A stretch of 63,088 bases of DNA, the filler included, from Olpidium bornovanus S191 (Eukaryota; Fungi; Olpidiomycota): the NCBI GenBank assembly GCA_017911155.1. It is 26 parts of 26 records of this genome, joined end to end, with 100 filler letters (N's around TTAATTAATTAA, not from the genome) between each part and the next. Parts side by side here need not be neighbours in the genome. Positions count along the whole stretch, not along the records: positions 4,372 to 5,632 come from JAEFCI010004201.1; 25 more parts are not named here. One strand, given 5' to 3'. The notes beneath the pieces were generated by a model. The model was given only the letters and a program-made list of their open reading frames with translations. It was not told where the DNA came from and did no database searches. A program made the position numbers and the translations under genes. Positions 4,372-5,805 of this stretch are shown piece after piece (positions within the stretch are counted from its first letter, which is position 1; every line of letters starts with the position of its first letter).

Positions 4372-4429
4372 TACCCGCGTGACCGGGGGATCTTTTCGAA
4401 AAAACAGGTGAGGTTTGCCCGTTTTTTTG

Positions 4430-4464
<35 letters not shown>

Positions 4465-5361
4465 CCCCGCCGGAAATTTGGTCGACGCCTGGAAATCACA
4501 CGCACCACGCGGGGTCGGTGCCGAGAAAAGAAGAACCGGGTGACTCACGCGCAGCCGTTTGCGGGTTGGCAGCCGCGACAGCGGTTCTTTCTCTCGGAGG
4601 AGCCCGTGGCGGTCACAAACCAATGTATATATTTCACTCTCAACCGGTCGGCGTCCGCGGGGTTCCCCCGGGGGCTGGACGAATATTACTTCCTGGGCCT
4701 CCTCAACTCGTCCGTGATGCGGTACTACATGTCCGCGCACTGTAAGTACGACCAGTGCGGACGGCTGCGTCTTTTTCGGGAAAACCTGGCCCGTTTGCCG
4801 TTTGCGACGCCTCAGAAGACGAGTTTGCGGATTCTCTCTGCGCTCGCGGCGCGGGCGGCTCGCGTGCGGAGGAGAGTCTTTGAGTTTCACGCCGACCGGT
4901 CGCGGATGGAATCGGAAGGCATCTCTGCCAGTCTGCTGGAGTACGTGCGAAACGGCGTCCCGAGACTGCCGGACGCGCAGGCAGAGCCCGACGGAAATCC
5001 GCAGGAAGCAGTCGCGGATTTTGCCCGCAAGAACGGCGACGTTCGGTCCAAATCCACCAGAGACCATATCAATGCTCTGTTGAGAGTATCTGCAATTCTG
5101 CAGTACGCAGTGGACCAGATCTGCTACCGTATATACGGCGTGGACGGCGAGCTCCAGAAAGACTTGGAAAACGAACTGGACATTAGGGCTCAGGAGGACA
5201 TCCGGAAAGCCGCAAGCTTTACGTATTCAGAAACCACGGAGGTAGCGCCTGGAGAGATAGATTTCGACGAAGTGCTCAAATTGGCAGACAGCGTTCTCAA
5301 GTCTCCAGCGGTGGACCCACACGTTACCCCGGCACATACGCCAAGTAAATCTCCGCGCTGA
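4372..5361 (+). CDS. TaqI_C-like (Eco57I / type IIG restriction-modification) specificity domain plus helical tail; 3' part of a putative N6-adenine DNA methyltransferase
   Basis: Proposed spliced product (exon 4372-4407, intron 4408-4554 GTGAGG...GCAG, exon 4555-5361): YPRDRGIFSKKQ|PFAGWQPRQRFFLSEEPVAVTNQCIYF...EYYFLGLLNSSVMRYYM...GRLRLFRENLARLPF. This matches the R..F.K...F...N..Y...YLLGLLNS...+Y...G..R+....L..LP pattern of TaqI-like C-terminal domains. The catalytic MTase motifs lie off-contig. Confidence 0.65.
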
Positions 5362-5805
5362 TTGTGCCTACCGGCCGTAGGCGGATAGAAATTGAACTTG
5401 AGTGAGGACGGAGGGCGATGGAAGGGGAGAACGGGGCGGGGAGGTCGAAAGAGCGGAGGAAAAGTAAAAACCTACACCCCTTGCAGGATAGAGGGAAGTA
5501 CCTTAATTTGCCATGAACAAAACGCGCATAACCACAGCAGAAACTTACCGGCATCCAGCGGACCCTGGCTCGTGGGAAAAACAGGATTCGGACTGTGTAG
5601 CCGTATGTGCGGATGTCTTGGGGTGGTGCGGANNNNNNNNNNNNNNNNNNNNNNNNNNNNNNNNNNNNNNNNNNNNTTAATTAATTAANNNNNNNNNNNN
5701 NNNNNNNNNNNNNNNNNNNNNNNNNNNNNNNNAAAGTTTAGCCCCCTGGATTGGTTCGGCACGCTGCAGGGATCCAGCCTTCAGACGAATCTAAGAAGTT
5801 ACCAC

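Follow-up and report, generated by a model that had tools for sequence, protein, structure and literature searches.

The window analyzed here is a 63,088-nucleotide stretch of DNA from the fungus Olpidium bornovanus S191, in which 26 parts of 26 records of the genome are joined end to end; the piece of interest occupies positions 4372 to 5632. It carries a single long open frame on the + strand (frame 1), which enters at the cut edge at 4372 and ends at a TGA at 5359 to 5361. A sequence-only reading of this DNA, made before any database search, had proposed that a bacterial-type adenine methyltransferase was encoded here in an intron-containing fungal gene, and the frame does hold every peptide quoted in that proposal. 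When a 165-nt phase-0 intron is taken out, the product is the last 274 residues of a protein, with 262 open codons lying 3' of the intron. An exact-product look-up of the open reading frame at 4408 to 5358 found it not to be on record.

The upstream exon end (4372 to 4407, + strand) is cut by the edge of the piece and encodes YPRDRGIFSKKQ, which corresponds to the family motif HPINYGYFSKxQ, as judged from its translation and a position-by-position match to 81 family proteins. On the far side of the intron, positions 4573 to 4803 (+) encode the last part of a TaqI_C-like target-recognition domain, including the elements PRQRFF, VTNQCIYFT, FLGLLNSS, CKYDQCGRLRLF, and ARLPF, with 23 invariant columns kept. 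A C-terminal helical region follows at 4804 to 5358 (+), recognized from the alignment and from AlphaFold models; it contains a variable linker at about 4975 to 5070 (+) and the conserved helix ILQYAVDQICYRIYGV..LQKDLENEL. The relatives of the protein end at a position comparable to that of the TGA (+). The GC content by codon position is coding-like across 4555 to 5358 (GC3, 0.62 to 0.77; GC2, 0.38 to 0.50), flat in 4408 to 4554 (0.49/0.45/0.49), and flat again 3' of the stop.

Positions 5362 to 5632 form a noncoding 3' flank, either 3' untranslated region or intergenic DNA, which is purine-rich on the + strand and has positive GC and AT skew. Neither Rfam nor a tRNA scan gave a match anywhere in the piece, 3' flank included. 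Within the flank, a purine-rich tract at 5395 to 5470 (GGAGGGCGATGGAAGGGGAGAACGGGGCGGGGAGG...) has strongly positive GC and AT skew and matches no RNA family.

An intron at a shared position

The donor CAG|GTGAGG at 4407|4408 and the poly-T tract behind it, a perfect run of 32 T's at 4433 to 4464 inside the intron, had both been pointed out from the sequence, and both are confirmed. In-frame CAG triplets that might serve as the acceptor end at 4554, 4572, and 4581. In the piece, YPRDRGIFSKKQ ends at 4407 (...FSKKQ) and PRQRFFLSEE begins at 4573. Because homologues join ...FSKKQ directly to PRQRFFL, the intron is placed at 4408 to 4572 (+; 165 nt, phase 0, GTGAGG...TGGCAG). Splicing of 4407 to 4573 restores the junction motif FSxxQPRQRFF, and the extended pattern HPIN[YFC]GYF[ST]xxQPRQRFF[LIV]D is ungapped in 81 of the 81 family sequences that carry the motif. 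The sole branch-point-like CTCAC in the intron lies at 4544 to 4548; its A (4547) precedes the AG at 4554 by 7 nt and that at 4572 by 25 nt, a spacing that would favor 4572 as the acceptor.

Two other acceptors were considered and set aside. The CAG ending at 4554, which had originally been taken for the acceptor, is present, but the homologues put the true acceptor 18 nt away, and use of 4554 would add six residues (PFAGWQ) that are absent from every relative. Use of 4581 would delete the invariant P and R. Similarly, a GTAAGT at 4742 to 4747 in exon 2 is a perfect match to the donor consensus, yet the alignment is continuous across it (HCKYDQ), and it is unused.

A phase-0 GT..AG intron interrupts the same Q|P boundary in Calcarisporiella thermophila (60 nt), Basidiobolus ranarum (61 nt), and Rhizophagus irregularis (130 nt), which bears out the claim that this is an intron-containing fungal gene. 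The Phycomyces gene has no intron at the boundary and appears to have lost it. In Paraphysoderma sedebokerense (locus L003, about 4700 to 4790), an intron lies about six codons upstream, inside the G codon of GY, an offset that could reflect either intron sliding or independent gain. The 147-nt stretch 4408 to 4554 is indeed free of in-frame stops, as had been remarked; this counts for little as evidence, since chance alone would leave about 12% of such stretches stop-free. By its sequence and its position in homologues, the intron is real, and 4407 would be joined to 4573 in vivo. The run of T's, if read through, would encode ten phenylalanines, and both variation in length and errors of assembly are likely there.

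Relatives among early-diverging fungi

A word-indexed protein search with the piece fragment returned nothing, and an exhaustive search was needed. Using phmmer on 1.84 billion protein representatives, we obtained 38 matches, 33 of them at an E value of 1e-10 or lower. The best relative is from Calcarisporiella (E, 1.3e-29; 40% identity), a similarity far too strong to be due to chance, and the identity of the piece to any protein in the collections searched is at most about 42% over the aligned domain. All matches are to long proteins, which align at their C termini; full-length relatives have about 950 to 2000 amino acids. Every named match comes from an early-diverging fungus: Calcarisporiella, many Glomeromycotina, Jimgerdemannia, many Mucorales, Umbelopsis, Mortierellomycotina, Basidiobolus, Conidiobolus, and the blastoclad Paraphysoderma. 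No relative came to light in the 185,579 GTDB genomes of bacteria and archaea by an exact 51-mer search and a pattern-plus-tblastn scan, in plasmids by tblastn, or in a scan of viral contigs. Furthermore, the homologous genes adjoin ordinary eukaryotic genes, such as those for a kinase, a RhoGEF, an Arf, and a RabGAP.

These relatives already have a name. In the parts of their paper that deal with the family, Lax et al. (2024; Nat Commun 15:6066, PMC11258239) describe MetB as a PF02384 protein conserved in early-diverging fungi. There, deletion of metB in Mucor lusitanicus is reported to lower 6mA by 70 to 75%, to abolish asymmetric 6mA together with the AAA(6mA)CA motif, which is the motif of the Mucor enzyme, and to confer hydroxyurea sensitivity. 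Later papers make the same point about MetB. Conidiobolus KXN73575.1 and Paraphysoderma KAI9143530.1 are cited as metB in the sections of the article on the family, and its supplement places ORY94032.1 and KAI8071772-4 among the metB homologues (PMC11258239). The piece matches the same set of proteins: P0004, which represents the 90%-identity cluster containing Conidiobolus KXN73575.1 (E, 2.7e-26); Syncephalastrum ORY94032.1 (E, 6.5e-24); and Paraphysoderma KAI9143530.1 (E, 2.1e-22). KAI8071772-4 are also among its matches. The piece is a divergent member of the published MetB family and not a new kind of gene, and we consider this family assignment highly probable.

With the relatives identified as the MetB of Lax et al., the statement that the only 6mA writers characterized in early-diverging fungi are MT-A70 proteins is out of date: those authors surveyed the fungi for MetB and put it to a genetic test in Mucor (PMC11258239). 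As described there, the survey, which included Chytridiomycota and Kickxellomycotina, places metB only in Blastocladiomycota (Paraphysoderma), Conidiobolus, and Mucoromycota sensu lato (PMC11258239). An earlier study had recognized the class, in that it described methylases of the EcoKI/TaqI type from basal fungi that carry a fused specificity domain (Iyer, Zhang and Aravind, 2016; PMC4738411); the likeness of the piece to clades 5 and 6 of their group 2 (EcoKI/TaqI-type) N6A-MTases is one of class, not drawn accession by accession.

Recognition and catalytic domains

Pfam finds one match in the piece, to positions 51 to 117 of the 118-position TaqI_C profile (PF12950; E, 7e-4), and its score of 20.3 bits is below the gathering score of 26.5 bits, so that the match taken by itself is suggestive. 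Part of the reason that only the second half of the profile is matched is that the sequence encoding the first half falls upstream of the piece. TaqI_C is also matched, at an E value of 0.01 or lower, in 23 of 30 family members (best, 8.2e-6), in the same C-terminal position where this was checked, and hhalign aligns a profile built from the C-terminal region of the fungal proteins with a TaqI_C domain that scores above threshold in a bacterial relative (E, 0.007). Together, these matches make the recognition of a TaqI_C-type domain in the original proposal probably right. Against the piece fragment, NCBIfam gave no match, and PADLOC gave only marginal methyltransferase and PglX matches.

The catalytic domain is seen in the full-length relatives. 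Eco57I (PF07669) and N6_Mtase (PF02384) score above threshold in all 29 of them, and the motifs GQFYTP, DPCxGxG, and TNPPY come before the TaqI_C-like region that the piece matches. The catalytic motifs whose presence was to be checked are thus found in family relatives, where they lie upstream of the part matched by the piece; the expected place of the domain in the Olpidium gene is likewise upstream of the piece edge at 4372. The class and the prokaryotic ancestry put forward for the protein, a gamma-class adenine methyltransferase in an intron-bearing gene, are supported by these motifs, but the gene is not a new capture, because MetB is already published. Mortierellomycotina versions (e.g., P0065, P0067, and P0078) are 1300 to 2000 amino acids long with large insertions, and in relatives from this group Pfam often finds the second half of the Eco57I domain only.

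An AlphaFold model of the fragment by itself reached a pLDDT of 77.8, and Foldseek found no meaningful fold match for it in the PDB, as is expected because the first half of the recognition domain is missing. For the same reason, a full-length relative was modeled instead, namely, the closest one (P0001; 1147 amino acids; pLDDT, 78.1; pTM, 0.79). Its best matches are CamA-DNA complexes (E, 1e-19; target TM, 0.70), followed by M.BseCI, BrxX/PglX, BpuSI, MmeI, LlaBIII, and DrdV. Residues 872 to 1147, the equivalent of the piece, are modeled as the end of the recognition domain, with its final beta strands and two short helices, and then as long helices; the long C-terminal helices have a pLDDT of 88 to 92 in the AlphaFold models. 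At the level of sequence, phmmer and a small profile of the C-terminal region gave only chance matches in the PDB, while the family profile placed CamA first (6.5e-16).

The orphan adenine methyltransferase CamA of Clostridioides difficile, which is specific for CAAAAA (PDB 7lni, 7rfn, and others), is therefore a close analogue by fold: a gamma-class enzyme made of a single chain, it recognizes DNA through a C-terminal domain and has no nuclease. Nevertheless, it is bacterial, has about 580 amino acids, is about 13% identical, and has no counterpart of the helical N terminus of the fungal proteins (roughly 270 residues), of their large inserts, or of their long helical tail. The type II methylases M.TaqI and M.BseCI, the latter being the second-best fold match of the P0001 model, share with Pfam TaqI_C and the piece a common motif pattern (an LG.LNS helix and a ..LP. 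strand), although the piece falls below the TaqI_C gathering threshold. Type IIG/IIL enzymes (Eco57I, BpuSI, and MmeI) and BREX PglX/BrxX have the methyltransferase fold and recognition-domain class in common with the fungal family; however, they rank below CamA and M.BseCI in the fold search, and the family has neither a detected nuclease domain nor a BREX-like gene neighborhood. The nearest counterparts are MetB of Mucor lusitanicus and the fungal "clade 1" homologues, fungus-restricted products of intron-containing genes with an N6_Mtase/Eco57I catalytic domain and a C-terminal recognition domain, which belong to the same sequence family as the piece and keep the same invariant C-terminal residues. 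The piece differs from them in its identity of at most 42%, its long unplaced branch, and a catalytic part that falls outside its edge. In the account of the domains given by Lax et al., HHpred matches MetB to MmeI (5hr4) and the recognition domain is MmeI_TRD-like (PF20466), whereas Pfam assigned the related TaqI_C in our analysis (PMC11258239).

Conservation and placement

In a 30-sequence alignment, 28 of 28 invariant columns of the C-terminal domain are kept in the piece: P1, R2, R4, F5, F6, T15, N16, Q17, C18, Y20, T22, L44, N45, C57, Y59, D60, Q61, G63, R64, R66, F68, A73, P76, Q177, D181, Y188, E199, and L202, the last five of which fall in the C-terminal helical region. One nearly invariant residue is changed (DQQG to DQCG). 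The retention of all invariant columns argues for purifying selection on the visible part, and the idea that the gene is still under selection holds up in this sense, as conservation.

In a neighbor-joining tree with 200 bootstraps, the piece is a long, unplaced branch that joins Conidiobolus at 40% support within a non-Mucorales group at 58%. Because the nearest identity is just 40 to 42% and the placement in the tree is weak, the gene may be either an orthologue or a paralogue of its relatives.

A probable MetB-type methyltransferase and its alternatives

We propose that the piece is, in all likelihood, the 3' end of a nuclear gene for a MetB-family DNA N6-adenine methyltransferase, from an early-diverging fungus or from a lineage closely related to these fungi. 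The piece would supply the final strands and helices of the TaqI_C-like target-recognition domain and the helical C-terminal region. By analogy with full-length relatives, the upstream part would comprise an N-terminal region made of helices and, with GQFYTP, DPCxGxG, and TNPPY, a Rossmann catalytic domain of the gamma class. Such a protein would likely be a single-chain enzyme. Its recognition domain would read a DNA motif that is short and asymmetric, and the adenine to be modified would flip into the NPPY pocket, where it would receive a methyl group from S-adenosylmethionine, on just one of the two strands. For the Olpidium copy, the catalytic domain, the enzymatic activity, and the motif recognized are all predicted from the relatives.

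Of the other explanations, a decaying or truncated remnant fares best, though we judge it improbable. The locus might be a pseudogene or a C-terminal fragment that has neither the catalytic domain nor methyltransferase function, in keeping with the visibility of just the C-terminal 274 codons, the mere 40% identity of the nearest relative, and the change of one nearly invariant Q to C. Such decay sits poorly, however, with 262 codons that stay open after the intron while all 28 invariant family residues are kept, with a GC3 pattern that is still coding-like, and with splice signals that are intact at a conserved intron position.

Alternatively, the gene could encode a type IIG-like restriction-and-modification enzyme or another defense enzyme, with a nuclease or helicase fused upstream, as had been entertained from the sequence. 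PADLOC and NCBIfam do return weak matches to type IIG enzymes, PglX, and MAD2, and the P0001 model does resemble BpuSI, MmeI, LlaBIII, and DrdV. Nevertheless, the PADLOC and NCBIfam matches are confined to the methyltransferase domain and lie far below curated cutoffs; relatives score 17 to 52 bits against NCBIfam defense methyltransferases (BREX PglX and MADS MAD2), for which the cutoffs are 353 to 900. Pfam found no nuclease family in the 29 full-length relatives, N termini included, the best structural match is an orphan methylase, CamA, and in the Mucor experiments, as Lax et al. present them, deletion of metB leads to loss of methylation (PMC11258239). A restriction-modification-like defense protein is without support and, in our estimation, very improbable.

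A bacterial contaminant or very recent bacterial transfer, with the "intron" an in-frame insertion that is read through, would suit a domain class typical of bacterial restriction-modification systems, a 165-nt stretch with no in-frame stop, and the precedent of one bacterial contaminant flagged in Batrachochytrium by Lax et al. (PMC11258239), but it is ruled out for practical purposes by the shared intron position and the eukaryotic neighbors of the homologous genes, given also that the bacterial, archaeal, plasmid, and viral searches yielded no relative, that the named homologues are all fungal, that the interruption falls exactly where three fungal genes have an intron, and that read-through would add 55 residues, ten phenylalanines among them, that are absent from all 81 motif-carrying relatives.

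Implications of a divergent MetB

With the piece read as a MetB-family gene, its interest lies in the history of the family. To our knowledge, no 6mA writer outside the MT-A70 class other than MetB has been validated genetically in fungi. The enzyme also clearly illustrates how a bacterial methylase of the restriction-modification type has become a eukaryotic chromatin enzyme, and a divergent member is one more data point on how broadly and for how long metB has been retained. The shared intron position provides independent evidence of an ancient transfer and, together with the eukaryotic gene neighbors, indicates that fungal genomes have carried the gene for a long time. No new question is opened, since the literature already covers the family, where it came from, and what it does. 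There is some chance, which we rate as rather low, that the piece comes from a lineage with no reported MetB, such as Chytridiomycota, Kickxellomycotina, or another unsampled early branch. If so, either the bacterial acquisition would lie further back in fungal history or the piece would belong to a distinct, deeply branching paralogue, whose recognition motif might differ.

Paralogues do occur in the family. Gongronella butleri has four MetB-like paralogues with consecutive accessions, KAI8071771 to KAI8071774 (P0034, P0033, P0026, and P0035), on one 933-kb contig, and a fifth elsewhere (P0031; KAI8068341). In P0031, P0034, and P0035, the otherwise invariant VTNQC of the recognition domain is replaced by LPAAC, LTSKC, or LTTQC; the set could be a tandem expansion with changed specificities.
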